From sequence record NC_041917.1: 64,000 bases of DNA; one strand, written 5' to 3'. The notes beneath the pieces were generated by a model that saw only the letters and a list, made by a program, of their open reading frames with translations, was not told the origin of the DNA and did not search any database. Positions 2,684 to 20,151 of the stretch are shown piece after piece (the stretch's first letter is position 1; every line of letters starts with the position of its first letter). The position numbers were made by a program, and so were the translations under genes.

Positions 2684-3049
2684 ATGAAAGTATTCATTGA
2701 TGATATTCGTGACCCAAAAAATTACTTGACACCAGAACAGGCTGATGGTATTATTTGGATCAAAGAGTGGTGGTCAGCAAAACGCTTTTTGATTGATCAT
2801 GCTGCTGAAATTGAAGTGATTCATTTTGACCATTACATGGATGAACCAACGTTAACTGGTAAAGATTTATTCTTTATGGTTGCTGGGGATTGTATGTGGG
2901 GTGGAAAAGAAACATGGATTAAACTACAGAAAATTTATTTACATTCTTCTGATGTTGATATGGTTGAAGAACTTGTTGAAGAATATAGTACTGAATTGGC
3001 TGAATCTGGTGTTGAGCTTATTGATAACCATCAAGAAAGGAACTACTAA
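2684..3049 (+). CDS. cyclic-phosphate-processing receiver-like domain protein
   Basis: KVFIDDIRDP ... IHFDHYMD ... GKDLF ... IYLHSS pattern recognised by eye. Confidence 0.6.
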   Translation: MKVFIDDIRDPKNYLTPEQADGIIWIKEWWSAKRFLIDHAAEIEVIHFDHYMDEPTLTGKDLFFMVAGDCMWGGKETWIKLQKIYLHSSDVDMVEELVEEYSTELAESGVELIDNHQERNY

Positions 3050-3406
3050 ATGAAAGTTTATGTAGATGATATTCGTAATCCACAAAACCATCTAAGTTCT
3101 GAACAGGCAGCCGATGTAGTGTGGATTAAAGAATGGTGGGATGCACGTAACTTTATCTTTTATAATAATTTAGAAATTGAAGTGATTCATTTAGATAATT
3201 ATCTAGGTGACCGTACCCACACTGGTGCTGATTTACTTCGAATGATTACATATAGGTTTCGCCGTGGGGAATTCCCTAAGTTGAAACAAATTTATCTTCA
3301 CAGTTCTGATAAAGATATTGTGAATAAACTGTATGACACACATATTGAATGTTGTACAGAAGCTGGTGTTGAATTAATTAAAAATTCACGTCCAAACCGT
3401 AGTTAA
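3050..3406 (+). CDS. cyclic-phosphate-processing receiver-like domain protein (paralogue)
   Basis: KVYVDDIRNP ... IHLDNYLG ... GADLL ... IYLHSS; tandem paralogue of 2684..3049. Confidence 0.6.
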   Translation: MKVYVDDIRNPQNHLSSEQAADVVWIKEWWDARNFIFYNNLEIEVIHLDNYLGDRTHTGADLLRMITYRFRRGEFPKLKQIYLHSSDKDIVNKLYDTHIECCTEAGVELIKNSRPNRS

Positions 3407-3412
3407 ACAAAT

Positions 3413-3537
3413 GGCGAGTTAGCTCAGTTGGTAGAGCACGTAGAAACCCAAGATTCAAGTACTTGAATCTTACAGCAACAATAACTCATACACTTTTAAT
3501 GTCGTGGTCGTTGGTTCGAATCCAACACTCGCCGCCA
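3413..3537 (+). tRNA. tRNA-Lys(UUU) interrupted by a 49-nt insertion (3441-3489)
   Basis: Acceptor GGCGAGT/ACTCGCC plus G-CCA; CG|ACA-CTTTTAA-TGTCG after removal; T-arm GTTGG-TTCGAAT-CCAAC. Confidence 0.9.
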
Positions 3538-3554
3538 AATAATAAGGAGTACAT

Positions 3555-3761
3555 ATGTTCCTTGATGAAATTAAATCTGTTCCATTCCCAAGCTATAAAG
3601 CTTTGGAAAAATCACGTAACGAATCGTCTAAGTCTGTTAATCCAACAACTTATGATCGTTATGAAAAGTACCATTATCCTGCTGGTACAGAATTCCGTTT
3701 AGCAAAAGCTATTGATTCTGTAATTGTAAAAATTAAAAAGGTAATTAACTATGTCGGTTAA
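3555..3761 (+). CDS. hypothetical protein
   Basis: AAGGAG RBS. Confidence 0.7.
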   Translation: MFLDEIKSVPFPSYKALEKSRNESSKSVNPTTYDRYEKYHYPAGTEFRLAKAIDSVIVKIKKVINYVG

Positions 3762-4356
3762 ATTCACACCAGTAGTAACTACATTGAAAAACACACTTGT
3801 TGTTGAATTGGAATACGAGCATGGTGATGCAGATGCAACTACCTTTGAATATGTAAATATTCCAGTACTTCCTGAACAAAAAGAAAGTATTGGTGTGTTA
3901 CTTTCAATGATTGAGCACGGTCTTGAATGTCAAAATGCTGAACGTGATGACTACACTATTGACCCGTTCTTTGTTGATGAAACCATTGATTATGATGATA
4001 ATCAAGGTATTCCATTAGTTGGTGTTGAAGTTCGCTTCAGTTTTGATTATAATTCTCCGAAAGAGAAAGGAACTGTCGTTAGCGTTGACCACGAACAGAA
4101 ATATATCATTATTCGTTCATCTACTGGTGAAGAACACCAATTTGACTTTGATGAAATTGAAGATTGTATTGCTTCATCAACAGGTATGATGGTAATGGAT
4201 GGTGGTGAAATTAGCTTTACATATAATGGTATTAATGTTAACATTGGCAATGTTGGTGATTGTACTGTTGATTGTCAATTTAATGCATCGGGTGGTATTA
4301 ATGCGGTTTATTACTACGATGAAAATGCTATTAAATACAGTGTAACTGAATATTAA
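3751..4356 (+). CDS. acidic hypothetical protein
   Basis: GAGG-like RBS, 201 aa. Confidence 0.75.
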   Translation: MSVKFTPVVTTLKNTLVVELEYEHGDADATTFEYVNIPVLPEQKESIGVLLSMIEHGLECQNAERDDYTIDPFFVDETIDYDDNQGIPLVGVEVRFSFDYNSPKEKGTVVSVDHEQKYIIIRSSTGEEHQFDFDEIEDCIASSTGMMVMDGGEISFTYNGINVNIGNVGDCTVDCQFNASGGINAVYYYDENAIKYSVTEY

Positions 4357-4371
4357 AATTTGCGGGAACGC

Positions 4372-4401
4372 TTGACAAACTGCCAAAGACCCCGCTATAA
4401 T
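4372..4401 (+). promoter_or_regulatory. sigma70-type promoter
   Basis: TTGACA-N18-TATAAT. Confidence 0.7.
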
Positions 4402-4563
4402 AGAGGGGTTCTTTATGAAGCATTATTATGATGTATTAGTGACGGTAGTTGTGTTATTCGGTCTTGCAACTTGTTTGTTTAAAAGTATAATTGTGGCATT
4501 TATTGGAATAGCAATATTCTTTTTAGGATGCCTTGTTGAATATCTTATCAATAGGAACAAAAC

Positions 4564-4905
4564 ATGAAACACTTCTTGGAAGTACTGTTCGTAGCAATTG
4601 CAATTTTGGCTGGTTTATTAGGTCACGTTGGTCTTGCGATTTGGGCAGGTATGTTTGGTGTGATTATGTGGTTTATTATCCCAAATCCAACGTACCAACC
4701 ACAAGTTCCTGTAGTACCAAAAATTAATGGTATTGAAGTGGAATTTAAATATCGTTCAGATGAAGAAGGTAAAACGTTCACCATCGTTGTGCCAAATAAT
4801 GGTGATGAAGAAATTGTTAATGTGGTTAAGTACATTAACAATTTAACAGGTACAGAAACCTCGGCTGAACGTTTAGAGATTTTATCTACTAAGTACTTAA
4901 TTTAA
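4564..4905 (+). CDS. membrane protein
   Basis: AGGAA RBS; N-terminal TM segments. Confidence 0.7.
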   Translation: MKHFLEVLFVAIAILAGLLGHVGLAIWAGMFGVIMWFIIPNPTYQPQVPVVPKINGIEVEFKYRSDEEGKTFTIVVPNNGDEEIVNVVKYINNLTGTETSAERLEILSTKYLI

Positions 4906-4921
4906 GAGTACTTTAATAGTG

Positions 4922-4945
4922 AAAGCCCTTATTAAAGGGCTTTTT
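4922..4945 (+). terminator. intrinsic terminator
   Basis: AAAGCCCTT-ATT-AAAGGGCTTTTT hairpin with T tract. Confidence 0.7.
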
Positions 4946-4949
4946 AATT

Positions 4950-5035
4950 GGGGATATGGCGAAATTGGTAAGACGCACCACACTCAAAATGTGGCGGTTT
5001 AATCCGTGTCGGTTCGACTCCGACTATCCCCACCA
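4950..5035 (+). tRNA. tRNA-Leu(CAA)
   Basis: CCACA-CTCAAAA-TGTGG, long variable arm, CCA end. Confidence 0.95.
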
Positions 5036-5119
5036 AAAAAAAGATTGACAGTGCTACAAATTTTAAGTAAGATAGAGTCATTGAGTTCAGCAAGTTTAAA
5101 AAAATCTTTAAAAAACTGC

Positions 5120-5148
5120 TTGACAAGTGATTACAAATTCGATACTAT
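5120..5148 (+). promoter_or_regulatory. sigma70-type promoter
   Basis: TTGACA-N17-TACTAT. Confidence 0.7.
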
Positions 5149-5234
5149 GTATCACATCGACGGATGTAAAACGTATCTCTTGGTACTCAACGTTGAGTAC
5201 TGTTTTAGAAAATAATATATAAGGGCTTTAAAAA

Positions 5235-5456
5235 ATGGCTAAGAACACTATTACTGATATTGGCGAAGTTGAACGTACTGTGAACTACATCAAGTTCCAG
5301 ATCTCTCAAGCTGACGAACAGCTTGCTCCATTCGCTAACAGCGATAAGCCAAAGATCTGCTATGCACATCTGTTGGATTGGAAAAAACAGTTGCAGTCTG
5401 AACTGTATGAAATCCGTCAGGCTCAGCAGAAAGCACGTCACAACACGCACAAGTAA
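5235..5456 (+). CDS. hypothetical protein
   Basis: AAGGG RBS; downstream hairpin. Confidence 0.7.
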   Translation: MAKNTITDIGEVERTVNYIKFQISQADEQLAPFANSDKPKICYAHLLDWKKQLQSELYEIRQAQQKARHNTHK

Positions 5457-5516
5457 TGAGCCATGCCGCTAACATCGTTAGCGGCGTCTTTTAAGTGATA
5501 AAAAGAGTATAAAAAT

Positions 5517-5759
5517 ATGAAAAGTGCAACTACTTTAAAGAACATGCATACTCGCATTGAGTTACTTAAATCACAACGTGATTTAGCATGGATTGAATGG
5601 CATAAGTTAAATGATTTGGAACAGCGTAACAAAGAGCAAGGTAAAGCATTGTCTCAAACTTTCGCCCTTATCACTAAACTGACATATGAAATTCGCGGTC
5701 TGCAAATCACCTTTGGTGAACTGAAAGAACAAGTCATCAAAGAAATCATTTTGTCTTAA
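5517..5759 (+). CDS. coiled-coil hypothetical protein
   Basis: ORF track. Confidence 0.7.
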   Translation: MKSATTLKNMHTRIELLKSQRDLAWIEWHKLNDLEQRNKEQGKALSQTFALITKLTYEIRGLQITFGELKEQVIKEIILS

Positions 5760-5775
5760 CTAAAATGGGGTTGTT

Positions 5776-6237
5776 ATGGGTGCAATTATTCTGTACAGTA
5801 TTTTAGGTTTTCTCGGTGTATTCACTTTGTATATGTTCGTTGTAACATCTGCAATGGGTACTGAACGTTTAAAAACTTCACAGTACTTTATGTCTTCATT
5901 GAGTTATAGTGAAGAAGCTACAGTAAAAATCAATCTTTTGATTGATAAGTATCAAGCTGGCTTACTTAAAGCTAAGCTTAAATCAAATGTTATAGAATTC
6001 ACCGAAATGGAAGGTAATGCACTGGCTGGTGAGATTTATATTGCAAATAAGTACTTCTCGTATGGTCAGTTGTATCGTTATGGTGCAAATGGAAATACTA
6101 AGTGGCAATGCAATAAACCAGATTTAAAAACTTTCAAGCGTATTATTAAACTTGAAAAACAACTTGATATTACTGATGAAGTTCCAGTACAAAAAAGTAC
6201 TAGTAAGTCATCAGAAGAACAGGTTATTCTGGACTAA
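5776..6237 (+). CDS. membrane-anchored hypothetical protein
   Basis: N-terminal TM helix. Confidence 0.7.
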   Translation: MGAIILYSILGFLGVFTLYMFVVTSAMGTERLKTSQYFMSSLSYSEEATVKINLLIDKYQAGLLKAKLKSNVIEFTEMEGNALAGEIYIANKYFSYGQLYRYGANGNTKWQCNKPDLKTFKRIIKLEKQLDITDEVPVQKSTSKSSEEQVILD

Positions 6238-6273
6238 GGGCAGCAATGCCCTATTTTAATTGAGAGATTTAAT

Positions 6274-6957
6274 ATGAATATCATTGAACGAGCAAAACAT
6301 ATTGTTTCCGTTTCTGAATTTGAAAGTAATGTTAATCCAATAGAAATGAAAAAGATTAAAGCAGTTTGCCCATACGATGAACAATATATTTTACGTATGG
6401 TGGTAAGTACCGATGGTTTGACCTATCACTTACCTATTGAATTACGATGGATGTATCCATTGTATATTGCAGCTTTAAAACATCAAACTGAAGTAATTGG
6501 GATAAAACATCCGTTTTGTTATATTACTGTTCGTCATGGTTTAGTTAAATCAATAACTGATGACGAATGGCACGTTGATGGATTCAGTACTAAAATTGTT
6601 CATGTACCTGAACAGAACTACATTTGGTCTAACAGTATTCCTACCGAATACACCAATGTTTCTGTTAAGTTCCCTGATGATTTTGATTCTAATATTCATA
6701 ATGTGAATCATTACTTACAAAAGTTTGTCCATAATGATGAAGTTCAGCAGTGTAAAGAAAATGTGTTGTATTGTTTAGACCCATATATCTTACATCGTCG
6801 TCCATCATCAAGTACTGGTGAAGTACGTACTTTTGTTCGTATCTCATTTGTTCCAATTGAAATCAATGATGTTAATAACACCCAAAATAAGTTATTACCA
6901 CGTACTTATAACAACGATGGGGTTCAAGTACGAAATAAATTGAGAACGTATGGCTAA
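6274..6957 (+). CDS. 2OG-Fe(II) dioxygenase-like protein
   Basis: WHVDG (HxD) ... LHRRP ... RTFVRISF double-stranded beta-helix pattern. Confidence 0.65.
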   Translation: MNIIERAKHIVSVSEFESNVNPIEMKKIKAVCPYDEQYILRMVVSTDGLTYHLPIELRWMYPLYIAALKHQTEVIGIKHPFCYITVRHGLVKSITDDEWHVDGFSTKIVHVPEQNYIWSNSIPTEYTNVSVKFPDDFDSNIHNVNHYLQKFVHNDEVQQCKENVLYCLDPYILHRRPSSSTGEVRTFVRISFVPIEINDVNNTQNKLLPRTYNNDGVQVRNKLRTYG

Positions 6958-7363
6958 AATTATTTGTGGATTTCCTGGTATAGGTAAGAGTAGTATTAAA
7001 AATATCGGCAAAGTACTTGATTTGGATAGTTCTTTGTATACCAAGAATTCTTTATTTCCTGCTAATTATATTGTTGATATTGTATCTGCAATGGATGAAT
7101 ATGATTATATTTTGGTAAGTACGCATGACGTACTTAGAAAAGAATTACAATCATTGGGTATTAGTTATACTAATGTATATCCAGAGATTGATTTAGGTGA
7201 AGAATACCACGAACGTTATGTTCAACGCGGAAGTCCTGAAAGTTTTATTAATTTTATTGATGAAAATTGGGATGACTTCATATACGAATTGCAGTATGAT
7301 GATTCTGAATATGTTGAACTGGAAAGCGGTCAATTTCTTTCAGATATTATAGCAAATATTTGA
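6950..7363 (+). CDS. P-loop kinase/NTPase
   Basis: Walker A GFPGIGKS near N-terminus, small NMP-kinase-like size. Confidence 0.7.
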   Translation: MAKIICGFPGIGKSSIKNIGKVLDLDSSLYTKNSLFPANYIVDIVSAMDEYDYILVSTHDVLRKELQSLGISYTNVYPEIDLGEEYHERYVQRGSPESFINFIDENWDDFIYELQYDDSEYVELESGQFLSDIIANI

Positions 7364-7389
7364 AACGAAAGAAAAAATTGTGGTATAAT
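7361..7389 (+). promoter_or_regulatory. TGAAAC-N17-TATAAT promoter (RNA-gene class)
   Basis: TGAAAC ... TGGTATAAT; five more copies in the window. Confidence 0.7.
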
Positions 7390-7406
7390 ATAGTACATAA
7401 GGCAAC

Positions 7407-7523
7407 GGAATCTTACAGCAAAAATACTAATTTTTGATGAAAACGAAACGACGAGGTTCGAATCCTCACCCACGAATTGCCTTATTATTAGTGGGAGCAC
7501 GGTGCTGGATAAACAAAGATTCC
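7407..7523 (+). ncRNA. ACAGCA element bracketing a degenerate permuted tRNA (Ile GAU-like)
   Basis: GGAATCTT-ACAGCA ... AAGATTCC; GAGG-TTCGAAT-CCTC precedes CCCAC..GTGGG. Confidence 0.7.
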
Positions 7524-7584
7524 AGAATTTAAGTTAGAAAATTATGAAACAAATCAAAAATTTGTGGTATAATATAAGAAGTAA

Positions 7585-7691
7585 AGCGGGATGGTGATTG
7601 ATGAAAGCTATTATTTGATTCTAGAAAATCATAATAAGTGAGTAAGAGAACAGGGTTCTTAATATCACGAGGGTTCGATCCCCTGTCGCTG
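7585..7691 (+). pseudogene. degenerate Leu(UAG)-like tRNA
   Basis: TGATT-CTAGAA-AATCA hairpin, variable-arm hairpin, AGGG-TTCGAT-CCCT; poor acceptor and D arms. Confidence 0.35.
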
Positions 7692-7706
7692 CACAAAGCA
7701 ACAAAC

Positions 7707-7824
7707 GAAATCTCACAGCAAACAAAACAATTTTTTTCCTTGCATAGAAAAACGGTGGGGTTCGATTCCCCAACATCCAAGTTGCTTTTAGGATGTGTCT
7801 GGAAGGCCGTATGACAAAGATTTC
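7707..7824 (+). ncRNA. ACAGCA element bracketing a degenerate permuted tRNA (Ala UGC-like)
   Basis: GAAATCT-C-ACAGCA ... AGATTTC; CTTGCAT loop, GGGG-TTCGATT-CCCC, ACATCC..GGATGT. Confidence 0.7.
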
Positions 7825-8000
7825 AGTTCCTATCAACTAAAAAGGATAGCATATAATGAGTTCTGAAGAAAATTTAGAATTATTAAATAAAATAATGAAT
7901 GCCATTGCAAATGGTAAATTGAGTGAAACAATGACTGAACTTGGTTACGAAGTAACTAAGAGTACTGATAAAAGTACAGAATGGTCATTAAAACAATAAT

Positions 8001-8074
8001 GTTCTGTTAGACAAATTGGTAAAGTCACCACCCTTTCAAGGTGGGGTTTACGGGTTCGACCCCCGTACAGAACG
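8001..8074 (+). tRNA. tRNA-Glu(UUC)
   Basis: CCACC-CTTTCAA-GGTGG; acceptor GTTCTGT/ACAGAAC. Confidence 0.95.
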
Positions 8075-8079
8075 CTAAA

Positions 8080-8192
8080 GGATTCGCACAGCAACAATAA
8101 AATCTTAAAATTCAATTGGTGAAAACAACCTTGCAGTTCGATTCTGCTTCCACAATGTGTGGATCTGGTGATGGATAGAAAAAACCGAATCC
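8080..8192 (+). ncRNA. ACAGCA element bracketing a highly degenerate permuted tRNA
   Basis: GGATTCG-C-ACAGCA ... AGAAA..CGAATCC; GCAG-TTCGATT-CTGC then TCCAC-AATGT-GTGGA. Confidence 0.65.
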
Positions 8193-8231
8193 TGATTTTA
8201 ATTAAGAAGTACTAAAGAATTTGATACACAC

Positions 8232-8384
8232 GGATTTATACAGCAAACATAATCCTAAAATAAAACATACGATAATGTTACTAACTCGGAATTCGTTCCC
8301 TTCGTTAGTACTTGGCAACTTGGGTACTTAAATAAGTTGTATCACCTCACGTGTATCGGATTAGAGGTGATTATAAATAAATCC
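8232..8384 (+). ncRNA. ACAGCA element with multi-hairpin cargo
   Basis: GGATTTAT-ACAGCA ... ATAAATCC; internal GGAA-TTCG-TTCC, CAACTT/AAGTTG, ATCACCTC/GAGGTGAT. Confidence 0.65.
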
Positions 8385-8392
8385 AGTAACAC

Positions 8393-8418
8393 AAAAGTAC
8401 CTTGAACGGTACTTTTTT
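8393..8418 (+). terminator. intrinsic terminator
   Basis: AAAAGTACC-TTGAAC-GGTACTTTTTT. Confidence 0.7.
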
Positions 8419-8420
8419 AT

Positions 8421-8513
8421 GGTAGGTTGGCAGAGTTTGGCTTATTGCACTTGTCTTGAAAACAAGCGGGGGTTAACAGCCCTCCGAGGGTTCAAATCCC
8501 TCACCTACCTCCA
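8421..8513 (+). tRNA. tRNA-Ser(UGA)
   Basis: CTTGT-CTTGAAA-ACAAG, long variable arm, CCA. Confidence 0.95.
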
Positions 8514-8530
8514 ATACAATAAAGGTGAAC

Positions 8531-8842
8531 ATGATGGATTCAGTTGGTTTAATCGTTGTGTTTTTAGAACAACGTGTTCGTGGTTCTCATGAAATACATT
8601 ATGTAGTACAAGTTACTGAAGAAGGAACTTGTGACGTTCATGTTACGGACTCATGGAGTTTTAAGTCATGGGAAGATTTAAAAGAAACGCATCCTACTTT
8701 CAAAAGTTTGTTATATGAATTTTTTAATTCTTGCAATTGGGCACCTTATGTAAACGAAAAAGAAATTTGGGCTGATGAAGTAATCGGCGGCGAAGGTCTT
8801 TATGATGATTATGATTCACATGTATTAAGTACTGATTTGTAA
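8531..8842 (+). CDS. hypothetical protein
   Basis: AAGGTG RBS. Confidence 0.7.
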   Translation: MMDSVGLIVVFLEQRVRGSHEIHYVVQVTEEGTCDVHVTDSWSFKSWEDLKETHPTFKSLLYEFFNSCNWAPYVNEKEIWADEVIGGEGLYDDYDSHVLSTDL

Positions 8843-8850
8843 AGTTCAAT

Positions 8851-8925
8851 GGGGTACGTAGCTCAGTCTGGTAGAGCAGCCATGCGAAAACGGTGTGTCG
8901 GTGGTTCGAATCCACTCGCTCCCCA
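8851..8925 (+). pseudogene. pseudo-tRNA (Phe GAA-like, damaged anticodon arm)
   Basis: Good D and T arms; acceptor has 2 mismatches; anticodon stem poorly paired around GCGAAAA. Confidence 0.5.
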
Positions 8926-8929
8926 CTAA

Positions 8930-8986
8930 GGAATCTAGCAGCAACCATAACCCAATCAAACTTTTAATTTGACAATTATGGATTCC
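8930..8986 (+). ncRNA. ACAGCA element carrying an isolated Lys(UUU) anticodon stem-loop
   Basis: GGAATCT-A-GCAGCA ... TCAAA-CTTTTAA-TTTGA ... GGATTCC. Confidence 0.75.
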
Positions 8987-9164
8987 CGTTATTTTTAAGG
9001 ATGTGATATGTCTAAAGAACAAGATGATTTTGAAAAAGAATATCTTATAAGTAAGCGTATTGATCCAAAAGCAACATTTTATATAAAATCTCGTAGAAAG
9101 AAAAATGGTTATAGAACTCGTGAATTGAATAATAAATTTCAAGAATTTCTTAAACGATTTAAAG

Positions 9165-9256
9165 GGTAAAGTGGCAGAGCGGCTGAATGCAACCGCTTGG
9201 AAAGCGGTCAGGTTAGGTAATCCCTAGCCTCGTAGGTTCAAATCCTATCTTTACCG
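9165..9256 (+). tRNA. tRNA-Ser(GGA)
   Basis: ACCGC-TTGGAAA-GCGGT, long variable arm. Confidence 0.9.
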
Positions 9257-9308
9257 CAAAGTAATAACTCCTTATTAAAGTGAAGTACAAAAACAACAGG
9301 AGAATATT

Positions 9309-9665
9309 ATGTACGAGAAAGATGATGGTCCATTAACTGATGAACAAATTCGTATCATCCGTGAAATGAATAGCCATCTGAATCAAACTGATTTAGAAAT
9401 TGATTTAAATTGGTTGAACAGTGATATACAAGGAAATGCAATGTATTACGACTATTATTACAAAGTTGACGGTGACCTTCGTCGTTATACCAGTAATCAA
9501 GAGTTAACGGATGCGGAAATCAATAATATTTTTGGTGCAAGCAAACAAGTAGTAATGCTTACTCCAATTGTATTTGAACGTGACGTAACTACTGAAGACA
9601 AATCTGGTAAAAAGATTAAAAGTACTGAAAAAGTACATGTTGGCTTCTTAGGATATGTGGAATAA
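9309..9665 (+). CDS. hypothetical protein
   Basis: AGGAG RBS. Confidence 0.7.
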   Translation: MYEKDDGPLTDEQIRIIREMNSHLNQTDLEIDLNWLNSDIQGNAMYYDYYYKVDGDLRRYTSNQELTDAEINNIFGASKQVVMLTPIVFERDVTTEDKSGKKIKSTEKVHVGFLGYVE

Positions 9666-9667
9666 AA

Positions 9668-10354
9668 ATGTCAAAAAAGACTGATAAAGAAGTAAAAGAT
9701 ACAAAAGAAAAGTACACTGTTGTTAAACACGGCTCACTAACACTAGTGAATACACCAACAGTAAAAACTTTCTATATGAATGGTTCTATTGATCATCCTA
9801 CATTAACTAAGTTCCAAAAGTTCTTAGAAGATACATGTACGGAAAATAATAAAATTGATACCGAAGAAACTGAACGCAAAGAAAAGGATGAATTTAAAAA
9901 GATTCATGATCCTGAATCTAAGCCAGAGTTTGTTCCTGCTAAACGTAAAGTTGAGCGTATCAATCTGGTTATCAATAGTGGTGGTGGTTTAGTTGCAGTA
10001 ATGCTAGAAGTTGTAGCACTAATGAAAACTTCACCAATTCCAATTGATACCTACTGTTTTGGTTCTGCAATGAGTGCAGCTTTCTTTATCTTCTTACATG
10101 GCAAACGCCGTTTTGTTGGTGAAGGTGCCTCATTTATGACACATAGCATTGGTGCTATGGCATGGGATAATGTACCAAACATGACAATTCGTATGGAGTA
10201 CTTGGTTAAACAAAACGAGTACGCACAACAGGAAATTGCTAAACGTACTGGAATTCCTCTTGAAAAATTAAAAGAGAAAGAACATCTCGATTGGTACTTG
10301 ACTGCTGAAGAAGCGTTAGATGTTAAAATCGGTGAATATTTGATCCGAGATTAA
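9668..10354 (+). CDS. clpP: ClpP-like serine protease
   Basis: INSGGG, AMSAA (catalytic Ser), MTHS (His), DWYLTAEEA. Confidence 0.85.
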   Translation: MSKKTDKEVKDTKEKYTVVKHGSLTLVNTPTVKTFYMNGSIDHPTLTKFQKFLEDTCTENNKIDTEETERKEKDEFKKIHDPESKPEFVPAKRKVERINLVINSGGGLVAVMLEVVALMKTSPIPIDTYCFGSAMSAAFFIFLHGKRRFVGEGASFMTHSIGAMAWDNVPNMTIRMEYLVKQNEYAQQEIAKRTGIPLEKLKEKEHLDWYLTAEEALDVKIGEYLIRD

Positions 10355-10400
10355 ATATAAATTCTGGATTCGAAAGAATCCTTTTTTAAGTGAGATGATT

Positions 10401-10625
10401 ATGGACAATCAACACAAACATATTAAAGGGTATCGTGACCTTTCACAAAAAGAAGTGGATGCGATGAATGAGATTAAACAACTGGCTGCCACCATTGGAG
10501 AGTTGATAGAAAAACTTGAAAGTACTGAATCAGTAGATAAACGTTGGCTTGCAATTGCAAAGACGGATTTACAAAAAGGATTCATGTCAGCAGTACGAAG
10601 TGTGGCTAAACCAGATTCCTTCTAA
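10401..10625 (+). CDS. acb2: anti-CBASS nucleotide sponge Acb2 (T4 Vs.4-like)
   Basis: MDNQHKHIKGYRDLSQ ... RWLAIAKTDLQKGFMSAVRSVAKPDSF closely follows the Acb2/Vs.4 signature. Confidence 0.9.
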   Translation: MDNQHKHIKGYRDLSQKEVDAMNEIKQLAATIGELIEKLESTESVDKRWLAIAKTDLQKGFMSAVRSVAKPDSF

Positions 10626-10634
10626 GGAACAAAG

Positions 10635-11015
10635 ATGTATACAACGGTTAATCATGCTGATATAATTGATGATATTATAACTGAAATACTTGAAATTTAT
10701 ACATGTCGAGTTGAAATTTATAAAGATGGTCATTTATTCACTCAGTACGGGTATAATACTAAACATAATGTGAATTATCATATAAATGTAAAGTACTATA
10801 ATGATAATCCAAGTAATGGTGATAAAGCGAATAGCTTAATGGTAGAATTTAAATTTACCAATAGAGTTCCGAAGGGACTAAAAAATCATTACAAGTTATC
10901 TATACCTGAAATAACAAGTCTTACAGAAGAACGGCATTTTCAATTAATGTTTATCACTGATGATATGTATTTGGATTATGAAGTTATAAATAAATTACGT
11001 ACACATATTGTGTAA
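10635..11015 (+). CDS. hypothetical protein (EExxFQ family)
   Basis: EERHFQL motif. Confidence 0.7.
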   Translation: MYTTVNHADIIDDIITEILEIYTCRVEIYKDGHLFTQYGYNTKHNVNYHINVKYYNDNPSNGDKANSLMVEFKFTNRVPKGLKNHYKLSIPEITSLTEERHFQLMFITDDMYLDYEVINKLRTHIV

Positions 11016-11023
11016 AAAAGTTT

Positions 11024-11077
11024 TAGAATCTAACAGCAATCAAAACTCATTGGATATATGAAAAAAGATAGATTCTA
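11024..11077 (+). ncRNA. minimal ACAGCA element
   Basis: TAGAATCTA-ACAGCA ... TCAT-TGGATAT-ATGA ... TAGATTCTA. Confidence 0.75.
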
Positions 11078-11083
11078 GTATTT

Positions 11084-11156
11084 GGGAATATAATTCAGTT
11101 GGTAGAATGCTCGACCGATAATCGAGTCGCCGCTGGTTCGAGTCCAGCTATTCCCA
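11084..11156 (+). tRNA. tRNA-Ile(GAU)
   Basis: CTCGA-CCGATAA-TCGAG (C33 rather than U33). Confidence 0.9.
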
Positions 11157-11255
11157 CGAAGTAGTTCAGTACTGAAAAATGTACAGTGAAATTATTCAAC
11201 ACTATAGGTAGCACTTTGAATGAATCAGTAAGCCTATAAGTAACTACAATAAATT

Positions 11256-11384
11256 TGGAATTCAACAGCAATTCACTTACTAAAAACAGCTACCTCACGG
11301 TTTGTAGGTTCAAGTCCTACCTTGTACTTTCGAGTACATGTGGTGAAAATGGTAAACACGGCTGTCCAAAAGAAATGAATTCCA
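11256..11384 (+). tRNA. circularly permuted tRNA-Leu (probably UAA) inside an ACAGCA element
   Basis: 3' half (ACAGC, variable arm, T-arm, CTTGTAC) precedes TTTCGA linker and 5' half (GTACATG, D-arm, GCTGT). Confidence 0.85.
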
Positions 11385-11436
11385 GTATTAATTAAGACAT
11401 AAATATTCTTATACACTTTTTTGTAAGGATATAATT

Positions 11437-12036
11437 ATGGAAATGAAAAAGTTGATGGAAGATATTTCTGCCATCATGGAAGGACAACTACCTGGTTATT
11501 ATTATCATGGAAGTTCTGCCCCAATATCAAATTTTAGTGATGAGTTTGTTGGTAGAGGAAATGATGAATACGGTCCGGGAATATATTTTAGTTCAGTTCC
11601 AAATACTTCTATAGGTTATGCAAAAGATGGCGGTTCTAATGGAATGGTATATCAGTGCGAAATCAATTTAAGAAAAGAACTATCTAAAAAAACTAGAGTT
11701 AATAAAGCAGTACTATTAAAATTAATGCAAAATACACCTGATGAAGATGCATATACTAACTGGAATGAAAATAAAAATGTTGCTTATAGAACAGCATTAC
11801 AGGGTTATGTAGATGAAGGTAATATGTATGATGCGTTAATGGGTGTTTGGTACGATTGGTATAGAGAATATCCTGTTCAATTCGTGCGTTCACTAGTACA
11901 GTTAGGATATGATGGATACATATATACTTTTGCAAGCGGTGAACGTTTTATTATAGTATATAATCCAGCAAGTATAAAAGTTGTAAACACATTCAATCCA
12001 GAAGAAGCTATGCAGAAACTGATTGGAAGTGAATAA
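11437..12036 (+). CDS. ADP-ribosyltransferase-like protein
   Basis: YHGS ... GPGIYFS ... ERFIIVYNP pattern of ART-fold (ART-PolyVal-like) domains. Confidence 0.55.
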   Translation: MEMKKLMEDISAIMEGQLPGYYYHGSSAPISNFSDEFVGRGNDEYGPGIYFSSVPNTSIGYAKDGGSNGMVYQCEINLRKELSKKTRVNKAVLLKLMQNTPDEDAYTNWNENKNVAYRTALQGYVDEGNMYDALMGVWYDWYREYPVQFVRSLVQLGYDGYIYTFASGERFIIVYNPASIKVVNTFNPEEAMQKLIGSE

Positions 12037-12043
12037 TAAGATT

Positions 12044-12163
12044 TGGAATTCAACAGCAAATCATTCTAAACCCGTAGCATGTCGTAGGTTCAAGTCCTAC
12101 CAGTACTATCGAGTACTGTAGCTCAGTTGGTAGAGCAGCCACCTTAAAAAGAAATGAATTCCA
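12044..12163 (+). tRNA. circularly permuted class I tRNA inside an ACAGCA element (anticodon uncertain)
   Basis: GTAGC-ATGTC-T-arm-CAGTACT-ATCG-AGTACTG-TA-GCTCAGTTGGTAGAGC-A-GCCAC. Confidence 0.8.
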
Positions 12164-12194
12164 GTATTAATTAAAACAACATGAGTATAAATCA

Positions 12195-12644
12195 ATGTCT
12201 GATAAGCATCAATTTAAAGTAAACATCGGTGATTGGTCACAAGATGGTCATAATCAATATGATGTTTTAGTTCTTAACAGTACTAAACCAGTAGATGAAG
12301 TACAAAAAGCATTTAAAAAAGCTGCAACAGATTTACATTTACTAGTAAATGGTCGTTTTCTAATTGCAGATGAATTTGAAGATTGTAGTCTATCTGAAGA
12401 CCATGCAGAAGTTCTTAAAAATGCAGGTGTAAAATTTGATGATTTAGTGTATAATGATGGCGATGATGAAGAACCAAATTATATTATTGAAGGTTCAAGT
12501 GATATGACTATCCTAGTGATGCGTATCGCCCAACTTGAATTGGACTTTGAATTTGAAATTACGAATGATGCAATTCCGAACTTTAACGGGTTCTGGACAG
12601 AAGAACAAATGCCATCAATCGGATATGGTTTGTATAACATATAA
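12195..12644 (+). CDS. hypothetical protein
   Basis: ORF track. Confidence 0.75.
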   Translation: MSDKHQFKVNIGDWSQDGHNQYDVLVLNSTKPVDEVQKAFKKAATDLHLLVNGRFLIADEFEDCSLSEDHAEVLKNAGVKFDDLVYNDGDDEEPNYIIEGSSDMTILVMRIAQLELDFEFEITNDAIPNFNGFWTEEQMPSIGYGLYNI

Positions 12645-12653
12645 AACAAGTTT

Positions 12654-12718
12654 TGGAATCTAGCAGCACCCATAAAATGAAATCAACTGTTAATTGAAAA
12701 ATTCAAAAATGGATTCCA
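12654..12718 (+). ncRNA. ACAGCA element carrying an isolated Asn(GUU) anticodon stem-loop
   Basis: TGGAATCT-A-GCAGCA ... TCAA-CTGTTAA-TTGA ... GGATTCCA. Confidence 0.7.
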
Positions 12719-12738
12719 GCCTATTTCGGAGTAAAAAA

Positions 12739-13008
12739 ATGTATTATGCTCGATTAGAATATCCAAACAATGGATATGAGATTGAAAGAATACGTCTTAA
12801 AGCCTTAGATCGCAAAAAGTACTATCCAGTAGTTTCGATTGATATTGGTAGTTCAAGTACTCGCATATATCTTGAAGGTGATAAGAATGCATATAATAGT
12901 GTGAACTTTGAATTCTATACCAAACATGGTGATGAATATATTCTTGAAGATATTTTCGAAGACCCTGATTTAAACCCGTACTTGGATGATGATGACGAAG
13001 AATATTAA
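12739..13008 (+). CDS. hypothetical protein
   Basis: ATG 12739 after GGAG. Confidence 0.7.
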   Translation: MYYARLEYPNNGYEIERIRLKALDRKKYYPVVSIDIGSSSTRIYLEGDKNAYNSVNFEFYTKHGDEYILEDIFEDPDLNPYLDDDDEEY

Positions 13009-13076
13009 ATAAAAATACCACAAATAAATGAAACGCTTCAAAAAATTGTGGTATAATATAAGTAAGTTAAACAAGA

Positions 13077-13148
13077 GGTTATGTCGTATAAAGGTTATTA
13101 CGGAGAGCTGTTAACTCTTTTATCTTGGTTCGATTCCAAGCATGACCG
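13077..13148 (+). tRNA. tRNA-Asn(GUU)
   Basis: GAGAG-CTGTTAA-CTCTT; acceptor GGTTATG/CATGACC; atypical D-arm. Confidence 0.85.
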
Positions 13149-13265
13149 CAAAAAGTTAAATTCACCAGGCGTACTATGGTGGGAAAGGTATCATGATACC
13201 AATTCGAATAGAATACGTATTAAACCCTTGAACGGTTTTCTGTAAACTCAATTTAACAAATAATT

Positions 13266-13320
13266 AAGAATCTAACAGCAATAAAAACTCATTCGATTAT
13301 ATGAAAAAAGATAGATTCTT
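13266..13320 (+). ncRNA. minimal ACAGCA element
   Basis: AAGAATCTA-ACAGCA ... TAGATTCTT; near copy of 11024-11077. Confidence 0.75.
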
Positions 13321-13325
13321 GTTTT

Positions 13326-13398
13326 AGGAGTATGGTGTAATTGGTTAGCACACGTGACTTTGACTCACGTAGTTGAGGTTCGAGTCCTTATATTCCTG
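13326..13398 (+). tRNA. tRNA-Gln(UUG)
   Basis: CGTGA-CTTTGAC-TCACG. Confidence 0.95.
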
Positions 13399-13549
13399 CA
13401 AATTAAAATTTCATTCATTTCCTTGTGTGAAACAAGCTGGTATGATTCCCCTTGCTTGTAAAATTATCGAACGGGAACCGCGTTGCACCTGTACAGGTCA
13501 GATTGTAAAGATCGAGTATGTACAGTACTGAGAGCGGCAGTACAACAAA

Positions 13550-13631
13550 GCGGGATTAGCTCAGTGGTAGAGCACTTGCCTTCCAAGCAAGAGGCGAATA
13601 GGTTCCATCGGTTCGAATCCGATATTCCGCT
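13550..13631 (+). tRNA. tRNA-Gly(UCC) with 15-nt variable region
   Basis: CTTGC-CTTCCAA-GCAAG; U73. Confidence 0.9.
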
Positions 13632-13749
13632 CAAACTAAACAAACAATAAGGTGATTTTTATGCTATAGAATCCTAGTACTGGTCCTCCTAAAGAATTTA
13701 ATTCTGATATAAACAACTCAAAATTAAACTACTATAGGAAGAACATACC

Positions 13750-14076
13750 ATGTTAAACAAAGAACAATATATTACTGTAAAAAATACTTGGAAAGCTGTA
13801 AAAGAACATAACATTTTTGATCATGTGATCTATAATGTACTTCGTGGAGTCCCATCTGATACTGGTTTCGCACCAATTACAGACAGGGGTCGTTTACACG
13901 CTAACAACAATGACCCGTTCAATATGTACAATTTCGCAGTTCGTGAAATTCATTATGAATTAAACGAAAAACGGTACAATTACGAAAAGACAGTAAAGCA
14001 TTATTCTGAACTATTCGGCATTGAATTTACAAAAGAACTCATCGAAGAAATTGTTTCTTTGATTAAAGTTAAATAA
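13750..14076 (+). CDS. hypothetical protein
   Basis: AGGAAG RBS. Confidence 0.7.
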   Translation: MLNKEQYITVKNTWKAVKEHNIFDHVIYNVLRGVPSDTGFAPITDRGRLHANNNDPFNMYNFAVREIHYELNEKRYNYEKTVKHYSELFGIEFTKELIEEIVSLIKVK

Positions 14077-14084
14077 CAGAATTA

Positions 14085-14141
14085 AAGAATCCAGCAGCAA
14101 CTAAAACTCATTCGCTTAATATGAAAAAGAAACGGATTCTT
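14085..14141 (+). ncRNA. minimal ACAGCA element
   Basis: AAGAATCC-A-GCAGCA ... AGAAA-C-GGATTCTT. Confidence 0.75.
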
Positions 14142-14161
14142 GTTTTTATTTGGAAAACGAT

Positions 14162-14389
14162 ATGAAACGTAACTACTTCCATTTTGTTACTTTTACTAAA
14201 CCAAAGGTATCTACAACTAAAAGTGCAGACGATGTTGCACAATTAATTGAAGATACTATCAATAAAATGCAAGAAGATGGTGAAAAATATGGAGAAATTC
14301 ATATTGATATGCCAGAAGACTTAACACCAGAAGAACAACAAATGTTCATAGAAGAAATTATGAAACGGTTTGGTGGAACTGATGAGTAA
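14162..14389 (+). CDS. hypothetical protein
   Basis: ORF track, ATG 14162. Confidence 0.65.
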   Translation: MKRNYFHFVTFTKPKVSTTKSADDVAQLIEDTINKMQEDGEKYGEIHIDMPEDLTPEEQQMFIEEIMKRFGGTDE

Positions 14390-14636
14390 TTCATTTTATG
14401 AAGATTTAAGATTTAGATATATTGAAGTGCTTGATTGTCAAGCATATTGTAATCCTGATGAACCTACTAGCAACAAACATTTAGTATGGATGTTATTAGA
14501 ACTAAGTAATCCTAATATGTCTGAAACAAAGAAACATAGATGGTTAGGATACATACAAGGTTGTATGGTTTCTAAAGGACTAATCAATGTTCAAGAAGAA
14601 CGTGAATTAACCAGAGATGTATTTCAAGGTAAATAA
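14382..14636 (+). CDS. conserved phage hypothetical protein
   Basis: KKHRWLGYIQG motif common in phage small proteins. Confidence 0.7.
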   Translation: MSNSFYEDLRFRYIEVLDCQAYCNPDEPTSNKHLVWMLLELSNPNMSETKKHRWLGYIQGCMVSKGLINVQEERELTRDVFQGK

Positions 14637-14637
14637 T

Positions 14638-14847
14638 ATGAAAAAATATTTTGTACGCTACACTTATCCTAGTACTGAATATAGTCAAGAACTTCATGAC
14701 TTTGAACGAATAGAAACAAGTGATATTATTAGTACTGAACACGAATTTGAAGATATTTCGGATGTTCGTGAAAAATTAAGAAGTGTATTTTCATGGCGTA
14801 ATATTCAAGAACATGAATTTGACGTTATAGCATTGAACGTGCTATAA
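14638..14847 (+). CDS. hypothetical protein
   Basis: AAGG RBS. Confidence 0.65.
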   Translation: MKKYFVRYTYPSTEYSQELHDFERIETSDIISTEHEFEDISDVREKLRSVFSWRNIQEHEFDVIALNVL

Positions 14848-14852
14848 TAAAT

Positions 14853-14924
14853 GGAGCTATCGTATATCGGTTAGTATACTCCCCTGTCACGGGAGAGAGG
14901 CGGGTTCGATTCCCGCTAGTTCCG
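14853..14924 (+). tRNA. tRNA-Asp(GUC)
   Basis: CTCCC-CTGTCAC-GGGAG. Confidence 0.95.
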
Positions 14925-14931
14925 CAAAAAT

Positions 14932-15195
14932 ATGAATAAGAAAGCTAAAAAACGTATTTTTAATACTGTGATAGAAACATCATCAGAACATTGTAAGTAC
15001 AATTACTGGTATCATAATCTTCTTAGAAAAACAATTTTACTTATGTCTAAAGGAAAGTATCGTAAATCTGAAAAAGAGATTATACAAATACTTACTGCAA
15101 GACATGGTAAACCCAAATATAATCCTACGCCAGAACAACATGATGAAATGGTTCGTTTAGAACAAAGTGTTGGTCTAATGTGTGGTGTTAAATAA
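14932..15195 (+). CDS. basic hypothetical protein
   Basis: ORF track. Confidence 0.55.
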   Translation: MNKKAKKRIFNTVIETSSEHCKYNYWYHNLLRKTILLMSKGKYRKSEKEIIQILTARHGKPKYNPTPEQHDEMVRLEQSVGLMCGVK

Positions 15196-15699: not shown

Positions 15700-15927
15700 A
15701 TGAAATCACTAGTAACTATGGTAAAAGACAAAAAAGTCTATTTTAGCCATTATCAAAACAACGAGTTATGGTACAGTACTGAATGCGGATTTATGTTTCC
15801 GGTTCCGGTATCTGATACTGGTAATGCAGAATTTAAAAACGAAGATAAAGCTACGTTCTTTATACGTTGGATTCGGAAACATCTTGAGATGATTGCTGAT
15901 GAGAGTCAAGCACAATCTGTCAATTGA
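15700..15927 (+). CDS. conserved phage hypothetical protein
   Basis: LWY..ECGFMFPVPVSDTG pattern. Confidence 0.7.
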   Translation: MKSLVTMVKDKKVYFSHYQNNELWYSTECGFMFPVPVSDTGNAEFKNEDKATFFIRWIRKHLEMIADESQAQSVN

Positions 15928-16228
15928 TGATTGGAAAACTATACATAATGTATTAAATGAGTACTACACTTCTGGTGAAGATGCTTTACATTATGGAAAC
16001 GTATATTATGAGTACTGGATGCACTATTGCACCTTTATGGGAACTAGCTTTAACTTTACGGATGAATACATTCAGTTTGGTGAAACACGTTCCTATATAG
16101 ATAAAGTACTTGATGAAGAATCACATTTTCAATTAAGTACTGTGTACAATTTCTACGATCTAACATTCGAAGATATTACAGCACTTAAAGAAATCTATAT
16201 ATTCAAACGCGGGGAACCTACACCATAG
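15893..16228 (+). CDS. hypothetical protein (EExxFQ family)
   Basis: EESHFQLST. Confidence 0.7.
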   Translation: MLMRVKHNLSIDDWKTIHNVLNEYYTSGEDALHYGNVYYEYWMHYCTFMGTSFNFTDEYIQFGETRSYIDKVLDEESHFQLSTVYNFYDLTFEDITALKEIYIFKRGEPTP

Positions 16229-17295: not shown

Positions 17296-17892
17296 ATGAA
17301 AATAAATTTTACAAAAGAGCAGCTTTTGAAAGCATCTATTGGTATAACAAGAAAAGTTCATCTTTATAGGAATTTAGGTATTGCGAATACAAATAGTACA
17401 ACATCTAATAAAATAAAACAACTGTGTTTAGATAATGGTATTGATATAGAACAAATAATACACGACAATTTGTATGAATATAAATCATGTCCAGTGTGTG
17501 GAAATGAGTTTAAAGTTTCTAAACAATATGAAACACATAGTCCAAAAACCACTTGCTCACATTCTTGCTCTAATACCTACTTCAGAAGTGGTATTAATAA
17601 TGGTTCTCATGCCAAAGCCCTATCAACAGATAAAATTAGGAAGGCTAAAGAAAATTCTCAATACAGAACACTGTGTTTTCATTATCATGAAAAGAAATGT
17701 GTAGTATGTGGGGAGAAAAATATAGTTGCTGTTCATCATTATGATGAAAATCATTATAATAATGAACCATCAAATTTAATACCATTATGTCCAACGCATC
17801 ATGTTTATATGCATAGTAGTTTCAAACATTTAATTGAAGAACAAGTACACCAATATGTACTTAACTGGAAAAATAACAATAATGTACTATAG
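17296..17892 (+). CDS. HNH homing endonuclease
   Basis: CPVC, CSHSC, CVVC..VAVHHYDENHYNNEPSNLIPLCPTHH. Confidence 0.85.
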   Translation: MKINFTKEQLLKASIGITRKVHLYRNLGIANTNSTTSNKIKQLCLDNGIDIEQIIHDNLYEYKSCPVCGNEFKVSKQYETHSPKTTCSHSCSNTYFRSGINNGSHAKALSTDKIRKAKENSQYRTLCFHYHEKKCVVCGEKNIVAVHHYDENHYNNEPSNLIPLCPTHHVYMHSSFKHLIEEQVHQYVLNWKNNNNVL

Positions 17893-20064: not shown

Positions 20065-20151
20065 GGGTCGTTCACTCAGTTGGTTAGAGTACCGGACTTT
20101 TAATCCGGCGGGTATATCCCATCGAAGGTTCGAATCCTTCACGGCCTACCA
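20065..20151 (+). tRNA. tRNA-Lys(UUU) with long variable arm
   Basis: CCGGA-CTTTTAA-TCCGG then GGG-TATAT-CCC arm; CCA. Confidence 0.9.

Follow-up and report, generated by a model that had tools for sequence, protein, structure and literature searches.

A permuted tRNA-like RNA of Serratia phage BF is probably a Y-RNA-like partner of a Ro60-like protein

Nucleotides 11256-11384 of a 64-kb stretch of sequence record NC_041917.1 (the window, 64,000 nucleotides) raise the question of what a tRNA-like sequence encodes when its 3′ half precedes its 5′ half: a decoding tRNA that is rearranged after transcription, or an RNA of another kind. An earlier note, made from the letters alone, had read this element as a circularly permuted tRNA-Leu gene in a phage. 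Our analysis suggests instead that it is probably a Y-RNA-like, non-decoding tRNA mimic that partners gp180, a Ro60-like protein of the same phage. This reading is built from sequence comparison and draws on a fold with covariation, a family of 11 copies, the likeness of a sister element to the Y-RNA-like family YrlA, the Ro60 fold predicted for the protein, and the linkage of such RNAs to the protein gene in three phages.

By Megablast, the window corresponds to the right-hand, terminal 64 kb of the genome of Serratia phage BF (KY630187 / NC_041917), a Rak2-like jumbo phage (genus Eneladusvirus, 357 kb). The search also retrieved near-identical Erwinia phages and, as more distant relatives, Yersinia phages fHe-Yen9-03/04, Pectobacterium phage CBB, Cronobacter phage GAP32, Xanthomonas phage XbC2 and Erwinia phage Kaldavass. 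Coordinates are those of the window unless said otherwise (window position = record position minus 293154). Neither the element nor the sister RNAs described below are annotated in any of the GenBank records examined.

Fold and conservation of the element

The element is made up of the following parts.

11256-11264, + strand: 5′ strand of the closing stem, TGGAATTCA, pairing with 11376-11384; compensatory changes in six of the nine pairs among eight homologs
11265-11271, + strand: single-stranded ACAGCAA motif, adjoining the closing stem on its 3′ side; CAGCA invariant in the eight homologs
11272-11285, + strand: variable 5′ linker, TTCACTTACTAAAA, 14-20 nt long and unconserved among orthologs
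11286-11290, + strand: 3′ strand of the anticodon stem, ACAGC, pairing with 11361-11365; C-G to U-A covariation
11291-11303, + strand: long variable arm of the class II tRNA type, ACC-UCAC-GGU; A-U to G-C covariation in the first pair
11304-11320, + strand: T arm, GTAGG-TTCAAGT-CCTAC; GGTTCRANTCC invariant
11321-11340, + strand: acceptor-like hairpin, made of the 3′ strand CTTGTAC (11321-11327), the linker TTTCGA (11328-11333) and the 5′ strand GTACATG (11334-11340); 7 bp including one U-U mismatch, with a UUCG loop
11341-11360, + strand: U8-G9 (TG), Leu-type D arm GTG-AAAATGGTAAA-CAC (the D arm itself at 11343-11359) and G26
11361-11365, + strand: 5′ strand of the anticodon stem, GCTGT, covarying with 11286-11290
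11366-11375, + strand: A-rich 3′ linker, CCAAAAGAAA; an A-rich strand is found in all copies of the module described below
11376-11384, + strand: 3′ strand of the closing stem, TGAATTCCA; AG and a U-rich tail come next

Along the DNA, the anticodon-stem 3′ strand comes first, followed by the variable arm, T arm, acceptor hairpin, D arm and anticodon-stem 5′ strand, and a 9-bp stem encloses all of them. The 3′-half-first body of tRNA-Leu type with paired flanks, as described in the earlier note, was borne out, and every part listed there was found in its place. Both strands of the acceptor stem are likewise present, but their pairing is less well formed than had been supposed, with a U6-U67 mismatch within a hairpin that reaches 8 bp if A-1/U73 is counted. 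When the halves were re-ordered and joined by any 7-nt loop, ARAGORN called a class II tRNA, while none of 300 shuffles was called. The intact element gave no ARAGORN tRNA and a partial match of only 15.7 bits to the Rfam tRNA model, confirming the expectation that standard tRNA finders would miss it. An Rfam scan of 11160-11440, including small ribozymes, returned only chance-level matches at E<=10 and no match to YrlA.

Six described phages have homologs, as do IMG/VR contigs of 241-412 kb, with identities of 72% to 100% across two phage genera, plus distant IMG/VR contigs. In the alignment of eight homologs, 98% of the cells pair and compensatory changes occur in 10 of 25 pairs, six of them in the closing stem, and four helices carry such changes. 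These pairing and covariation values were reached by none of 500 shuffles, and slid registers pair at only ~38%; the permuted tRNA-like fold is therefore not a product of chance. The D-arm pattern TGGTGAAANNGGTARACACGGCT is invariant in all eight homologs and also retrieves genuine canonical tRNA-Leu genes. Although tandem duplication of a tRNA-Leu gene followed by loss of the outer halves would give this order of parts, and although odd tRNA-like sequences abound in this region, an inert pseudogene remnant of such a duplication or rearrangement is hardly credible in view of this identity across genera, the compensatory changes in four helices and the invariant D arm.

Other candidate identities for the element were rejected as well. 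The flanks are far too short for a group I intron; a consensus scan for an intrinsic terminator or promoter showed nothing specific at the element except the T arm itself; and the overlapping open reading frames (ORFs), of 31-58 amino acids, are due to chance only, which rules against a protein-coding element.

A family of RNAs with a shared closing module

The stem and motif that enclose the element recur in a module consisting of an 8-9-bp stem, (A/G/C)CAGCAA, a cargo, an A-rich strand, the return strand of the stem, (A/U)G and a U-rich tail. We found 11 such modules on the + strand of 3001-15000, where 200 dinucleotide shuffles gave a mean of 0.26 (maximum 3), with none on the - strand and two in the remaining 49 kb of the window; the relatives carry 12-16 copies each. 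The ACAGCAA motif is present in every module copy of BF, CBB, GAP32 and XbC2, and of Klebsiella phage KP13-16, E. coli phage Alf5 and Mycobacterium phage Lumos. G-U wobbles in the closing stems occur in the + strand sense only, a pattern that suggests an RNA helix and not a DNA-level repeat. A DNA inverted repeat or mobile element is disfavoured by these strand-specific wobbles, by the empty - strand, by the covariation and by an inside-out tRNA-Lys member. No family in Rfam 15 captures the module RNAs.

The likeness of this family to YrlA is carried by a sister of the element. Part of that sister copy (12077-12139) matches the tRNA-like domain in the Rfam YrlA model (RF02553) at 40.3 bits (E=1.6e-6, model positions 24-84), and its ortholog in GAP32 matches the full model at 44.7 bits; elsewhere, copies in KP13-16 and Lumos score 39.7 and 39.3 bits, respectively. 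Published YrlA RNAs have paired ends, a conserved 5′ motif, a variable region, a T arm, a closed acceptor-like stem-loop and a D arm (PMC4201824). The element at 11256-11384 has the terminal stem of Y RNAs, its ends pairing over 9 bp, and the YrlA order of variable arm, T arm, closed acceptor-like stem-loop and D arm in its tRNA-like domain. It thus resembles YrlA (Chen et al. 2014, PMC4201824) in the end-pairing stem beside a conserved single-stranded motif, in the permuted tRNA-like middle and in the presence of a Ro60-type ring protein encoded in the same genome. The differences are that the tRNA mimicked here is of class II (Leu type), its variable arm being long, and that the BF protein belongs to the DUF2828 branch and not to Pfam TROVE.

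The other members of the family in BF are as follows.

12044-12163, + strand: sister element with a class I tRNA-like cargo, a perfect 7-bp acceptor hairpin and an AUCG loop
3413-3537, + strand: tRNA-Lys(UUU) in normal order with a hairpin-closed module between nt 28 and 29; Rfam tRNA 48.6 bits, 62-nt insert
7407-7524, + strand: module RNA with a reduced tRNA-like cargo (T arm, acceptor-like hairpin, mini D hairpin); strong sigma-70 promoter just upstream
7707-7825, + strand: module RNA with a reduced tRNA-like cargo
8080-8193, + strand: module RNA with a reduced tRNA-like cargo
8232-8385, + strand: module RNA whose cargo, of 150 nt, is not tRNA-like
8930-8987, + strand: short module RNA; hairpin with the tRNA-Lys anticodon loop, UCAAA-CUUUUAA-UUUGA
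11025-11077, + strand: short module RNA with a hairpin cargo
13267-13320, + strand: short module RNA with a hairpin cargo
14086-14141, + strand: short module RNA with a hairpin cargo

The tRNA-Lys member, annotated as a pseudo-tRNA in RefSeq, has a 7-bp acceptor stem, an encoded CCA and a 49-nt 'hairpin + ACAGCAA' module. Without the module it would read CGACA-CUUUUAA-UGUCG, and its split anticodon stem is kept by compensatory changes in CBB, GAP32 and XbC2. In other members of this inserted-module type, the loop is non-canonical, with a length of 5 or 10 nt, or is the 7-nt sequence ATAGGGA. Where GAP32 and XbC2 have a module-bearing tRNA-Lys-like gene, BF has a tRNA-like sequence at 8852-8924 that is annotated as tRNA-Ser (Rfam tRNA 36.4 bits, no ARAGORN call), with a 3-bp anticodon stem and a 10-nt loop. 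Short copies in CBB, GAP32 and XbC2 (loci L008 ~17378-17445, L009 ~15740-15807 and L010 ~15906-15970) carry the exact tRNA-Asn loop CUGUUAA and lie ~100-630 nt upstream of the tRNA-Asn gene (~100 nt only in GAP32).

A strong promoter of the sigma-70 type, its -10 extended (…TTGTGGTATAATATA…), recurs at 7360-7389, 7544-7573 and 13028-13057, and the module RNA at 7407 lies ~10 nt downstream of the first of these. Because a strong promoter precedes that copy, the sequence suggests that the module RNAs are early, independently transcribed genes.

Some copies also resemble the Dictyostelium Class I RNA (RF01414), in which a short 5′/3′ stem is followed by CCUUACAGCAA; some phage copies read CUUACAGCAA. 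Weak matches of 23.6-24.4 bits, against a gathering score of 41.5, were obtained at 7707-7865 in BF and at 8505-8567 and 8594-8644 in KP13-16 (locus L030). Class I RNAs, by contrast, are eukaryotic, ~60 nt long and without a tRNA-like part, and the match may be a coincidence, since the scores fall far below the gathering threshold.

We next consider whether the halves of the element could be joined into a tRNA. A true circularly permuted tRNA-Leu gene would have flanks that direct cleavage and ligation to a circle, after which RNase P and a 3′ nuclease would open the acceptor loop, CCA would be added and a decoding tRNA-Leu(UAA) would be made. The 3′-half-first order, the tRNA-like body and the 7-bp acceptor stem in BF speak for such a gene, as does the intron-like position of the module inside the normal-order tRNA-Lys, where excision would restore a perfect anticodon arm. 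The BF genome also supplies an RlaP nucleotidyltransferase, a CCA-adding-type enzyme and, besides Rnl1 and Pnkp, a second RNA ligase. A CUUAAAA loop seems to have left remnants, which point the same way: ACUAAAA precedes ACAGC in the element, whose 5′ linker (11272-11285) may hold such a remnant, and CUUAAAA follows the 5′ strand in the sister copy.

Known permuted tRNA genes, from Cyanidioschyzon merolae, green algae and Thermofilum pendens, share with the element the upstream 3′ half, the short linker closing the acceptor end and the pairing of leader and trailer, and are defined by a bulge-helix-bulge at the junction; joining gives them a canonical 7-nt loop, and the archaeal/eukaryal splicing endonuclease processes them (PMC3978253). 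None of these latter features is present here. The element lacks a bulge-helix-bulge and a conserved canonical 7-nt loop or anticodon, and also a conserved 7-bp acceptor stem with a fitting discriminator. The 5′ flank ACAGCAATTCACTTACTAAAA and the 3′ flank CCAAAAGAAA share no 4-mers that could pair with each other, and the junction of the flanks is a 21 x 10 nt internal loop. To our knowledge, the processing features of permuted tRNAs have no known counterpart in bacteria or phages. Among the eight homologs, the flanks at the anticodon stem vary in sequence as well as in length (14-20 nt and 9-11 nt), and candidate loops of the sister type read UAA, AUA and AAA. The UAA anticodon that the earlier note expected from joining the halves was therefore not upheld, there being no conserved 7-nt loop or common anticodon across orthologs, and the exon borders of the tRNA-Lys member, applied to the permuted members, leave loops of 3-5 nt.

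The acceptor end tells equally against a mature tRNA. Ortholog acceptor arms range from 5 to 9 bp, with G-A mismatches and varied loops: CBB, GAP32 and XbC2 have 5 bp, tandem G-A mismatches and two further pairs, one IMG/VR homolog has 9 bp and another 5 bp, the loops all differ, and the XbC2 sister copy has no acceptor linker at all. The UUCG-type acceptor loop noted earlier is present in BF and otherwise only in the Yersinia phages, other orthologs having different loops. The discriminator is U (U73 in BF) or G (G73 in orthologs) and not A73, on which leucyl-tRNA synthetase (LeuRS) of the E. coli type, or bacterial type, depends. BF moreover already has canonical tRNA-Leu genes of the (UAA), (UAG) and (CAA) types; the window, in which ARAGORN called 21 tRNAs, holds no canonical tRNA-Leu(UAA), as had been pointed out, but the genome has one at record 291529-291617, ~1.6 kb upstream of the window start. 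Finally, the same closing module also encloses plain hairpins and a non-tRNA cargo, and the sister element matches YrlA, a Y-RNA-like family of exactly this topology. Given the loop, the missing bulge-helix-bulge, the acceptor, the discriminator and the existing tRNA-Leu(UAA), we find little support for maturation via a circle into a decoding tRNA-Leu(UAA) that can be charged, and regard a permuted tRNA-Leu gene as very unlikely. Tests for permuted-tRNA signatures will flag these RNAs, but annotating them as tRNA genes is unwarranted.

Two-piece (permuted) tmRNA offers a bacterial precedent for a tRNA-like domain in permuted order that is opened by processing; unlike the element, which has no tag ORF, it accepts alanine at its end and contains a reading frame for a tag. 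An ARAGORN search for tmRNA in the window found none. In KP13-16 (locus L030, 9363-9596), sub-threshold matches to tmRNA (31.6 bits) and permuted tmRNA (23.4 bits) lie between the Y-RNA-like and tRNA clusters.

A Ro60-like protein and its linkage to module RNAs

The window has no ORF of 400 amino acids or more, and so no Ro60 gene near the element. Elsewhere in the genome, BF encodes gp180 (record 101477-103003), a protein of 508 amino acids annotated as 'RNA-binding protein' and carrying Pfam DUF2828 and DUF7788. Its AlphaFold model (pLDDT 89.3) was used in a Foldseek search of the PDB, in which the best six matches were all Ro60/TROVE structures, including 9kop, 1yvr, 9nf8, 2nvo and 9l5y. 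These span phage phiLo (9kop, 9l5y), Xenopus (1yvr, TM 0.57, E=1.7e-9), human and Deinococcus Rsr, and vWA domains rank far behind them. The DxSxS MIDAS motif in the vWA domain of gp180 is invariant. By its predicted fold, a HEAT-repeat ring with a vWA/MIDAS domain, gp180 is a Ro60-type protein, although not by Pfam TROVE. Homologs of gp180 occur in 709 phage records, among them mycobacteriophages, Felix O1-like phages and jumbo enterobacterial phages, and some of those in mycobacteriophages are annotated 'Ro-like RNA binding protein'. DUF2828 is also mentioned in plant papers. In metagenomic contigs (loci L027-L029), the genes around those for DUF2828 proteins gave no further clue.

The gp180 gene lies two genes downstream of the gene for a second RNA ligase, gp178, and both belong to a large RNA-repair set outside the window (record 36562-107462) that also includes a T4-type Rnl1 (gp072), Pnkp (gp076), a Thg1-like enzyme (gp146), an RlaP nucleotidyltransferase (gp153) and a CCA-adding-type enzyme (gp188). 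A separate protein, gp110, is annotated 'RNA ligase' and is an Acb1-like 2H phosphoesterase.

In three unrelated phages, RNAs with the same module stand directly downstream of the Ro60-like gene, on the same strand. KP13-16 has five 'stem + (A/T)CAGCAA' RNAs, the first ~100 nt past the Ro-like gene and one of them the YrlA match noted above; another copy is permuted tRNA-like. Alf5 has four copies, one of which is permuted tRNA-like, and Lumos has three, including its YrlA match. The positional rule of YrlA genes (within <= ~4 kb of Ro60 and on the same strand) thus holds in KP13-16, Alf5 and Lumos, and fails in BF.

A phage precedent for such a pair exists. The Ro60 of Thermus phage phiLo binds phage Y-RNA-like RNAs and recruits host PNPase (PMC12135203). 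As in BF, a phage Ro60-fold protein occurs there together with RNAs (Yrl1/Yrl2) whose 5′/3′ stem flanks a motif-bearing internal loop (PMC12135203); in contrast to the BF RNAs, those of phiLo have a CGAA motif, are simple hairpins with no described tRNA mimic, and are encoded directly upstream of the protein gene.

On this basis, we propose that the element yields a small non-coding RNA of ~130 nt whose ends would pair as the 9-bp closing stem, with ACAGCAA opposite the A-rich strand, and whose effector domain would mimic the body of a class II tRNA-Leu without an anticodon loop. The closing stem and ACAGCAA may dock onto the Ro60-like ring, and the tRNA-shaped domain may then tether, or act as a decoy for, proteins that recognise the tRNA elbow or a Leu-type D arm. 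Candidate targets are host PNPase, RNase P and LeuRS, the phage Rnl1, Pnkp and CCA-adding enzymes, and host defence nucleases that target tRNAs. The resulting ribonucleoprotein might serve tRNA repair, surveillance or decoy, keeping the phage tRNA pool working during infection, and the RNA would presumably not be rejoined into a decoding tRNA.

Several observations weigh against a Y-RNA-like partner of gp180. The gp180 gene lies ~200 kb from the module RNAs in BF, and likewise in its relatives. No sister copy reaches the RF02553 gathering score of 69 bits, and the element itself has no YrlA match. The BF motif is ACAGCAA, whereas that of YrlA is GNCGAAN0-1G (or CGAA), and BF has ~11 RNAs at ~200 kb from the protein gene, compared with one or two within ~4 kb for YrlA. 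The copies often lie 20-50 nt upstream of ORFs, where a role in cis, in mRNA processing or stability, is possible. Lastly, the tRNA-Lys member 3413-3537 is perfect once the module is excised, so that a splicing-type, or cleavage-ligation, reading of the module is also possible.

The neighbourhood of the module RNAs has further unusual features. Just upstream of the window, a tRNA with the suppressor-type anticodon CUA is encoded at record 289666-289741. In tRNA-Ile(GAU) (11084-11157), C33 replaces the near-universal U33, giving the anticodon loop CCGAUAA. The class I tRNA-Lys(UUU) (20065-20151) and tRNA-Gly(UCC) (13550-13632) carry unusual insertions of 13-15 nt in the variable region; the tRNA-Lys(UUU) genes of CBB and GAP32 are without this insertion. 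The gp469 product (10401-10625) contains an Acb2/Tad1 hairpin domain of the anti-CBASS / anti-Thoeris sponge type, and gp467 (11437-12036), whose gene sits between both permuted tRNA-like RNAs, is an ART-PolyVal ADP-ribosyltransferase.

Alternative roles in trans and in cis, and what the family may mean

The position of the copies bears on whether they act in cis. As a processing or stability element of early polycistronic transcripts, without a dedicated protein partner, the tRNA-like fold would recruit RNase P, as in tRNA punctuation or MALAT1-mascRNA, and the closing stem would hold the two halves together and protect the new ends of the neighbouring mRNAs. The placement of copies in intergenic gaps 20-50 nt upstream of ORFs fits this role, as do the permuted elements flanking the ADP-ribosyltransferase gene at 11437-12036 and the U-rich tails after the closing stem, where IMG/VR homologs have T-runs. 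RNase P also cuts the YrlA of M. smegmatis, which is its substrate and receives CCA (PMC4201824). The short copies, however, offer RNase P no tRNA-like part, and the invariance of ACAGCAA suggests recognition by sequence. At 7407-7524, the copy is preceded by a strong promoter of its own and has a second promoter after it, as in a stand-alone RNA gene. Nor does a cis role account for the tight linkage with the Ro60-like gene that three other phage lineages show. We therefore consider a purely cis-acting element rather unlikely.

Alternatively, the RNA may be a free-standing decoy or sponge, independent of Ro60, that titrates host tRNA-targeting nucleases or tRNA-binding enzymes, with the closing module merely stabilising it, for example by putative Hfq binding at ARN-like AAC-AGC-AA repeats and the U tail. 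The hairpins of sister RNAs with the exact anticodon loops of tRNA-Lys (CUUUUAA) and tRNA-Asn (CUGUUAA) are what a decoy might display, anti-defence domains (Acb2/Tad1 and an ADP-ribosyltransferase) are encoded nearby, and the tRNAs of BF show unusual changes in anticodon loop and variable arm. Yet an anticodon nuclease would find no anticodon loop in the element, and the linkage with the Ro60-like gene seen in other phages speaks for a protein partner; a decoy acting on its own is thus an improbable explanation.

A Y-RNA-like RNA that partners gp180 accordingly remains our preferred reading, at the strength given above. In the searchable literature we found no description of these RNAs, of Y RNAs of the ACAGCAA type, of permuted tRNAs in phages, or of DUF2828 as their Ro60 partner. 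We tentatively suggest, as a possibility that is less likely than not, that 'closing stem + ACAGCAA' marks a large and hitherto unrecognised class of Y RNAs in phages, with Ro60-like proteins of the DUF2828 type as partners; in this class, a generic handle would be combined with interchangeable cargo. If this is true, the cargos on the handle include whole-tRNA mimics (Leu class II and class I), bare anticodon stem-loops (Lys and Asn) and a complete chargeable tRNA-Lys, and the complex would be a programmable ribonucleoprotein for repairing, shielding or decoying tRNAs that host defence nucleases attack. In a bolder version, the module could possibly be a protein-dependent signal for RNA cleavage and ligation, by which the tRNA-Lys member would be spliced and the permuted members circularised.

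One phage thus carries ~11 RNAs in which a single shared handle is joined to varied tRNA-derived cargos, one of them copying a specific class II tRNA. The linkage, in other phages, to the DUF2828 family of Ro60-like proteins, which is widespread in tRNA-rich phages, makes for a testable protein-RNA pair, and the natural series of cargo variants could show what the tRNA mimic recruits. Together, these features suggest a phage strategy for repairing tRNAs or for countering tRNA-targeting immunity.

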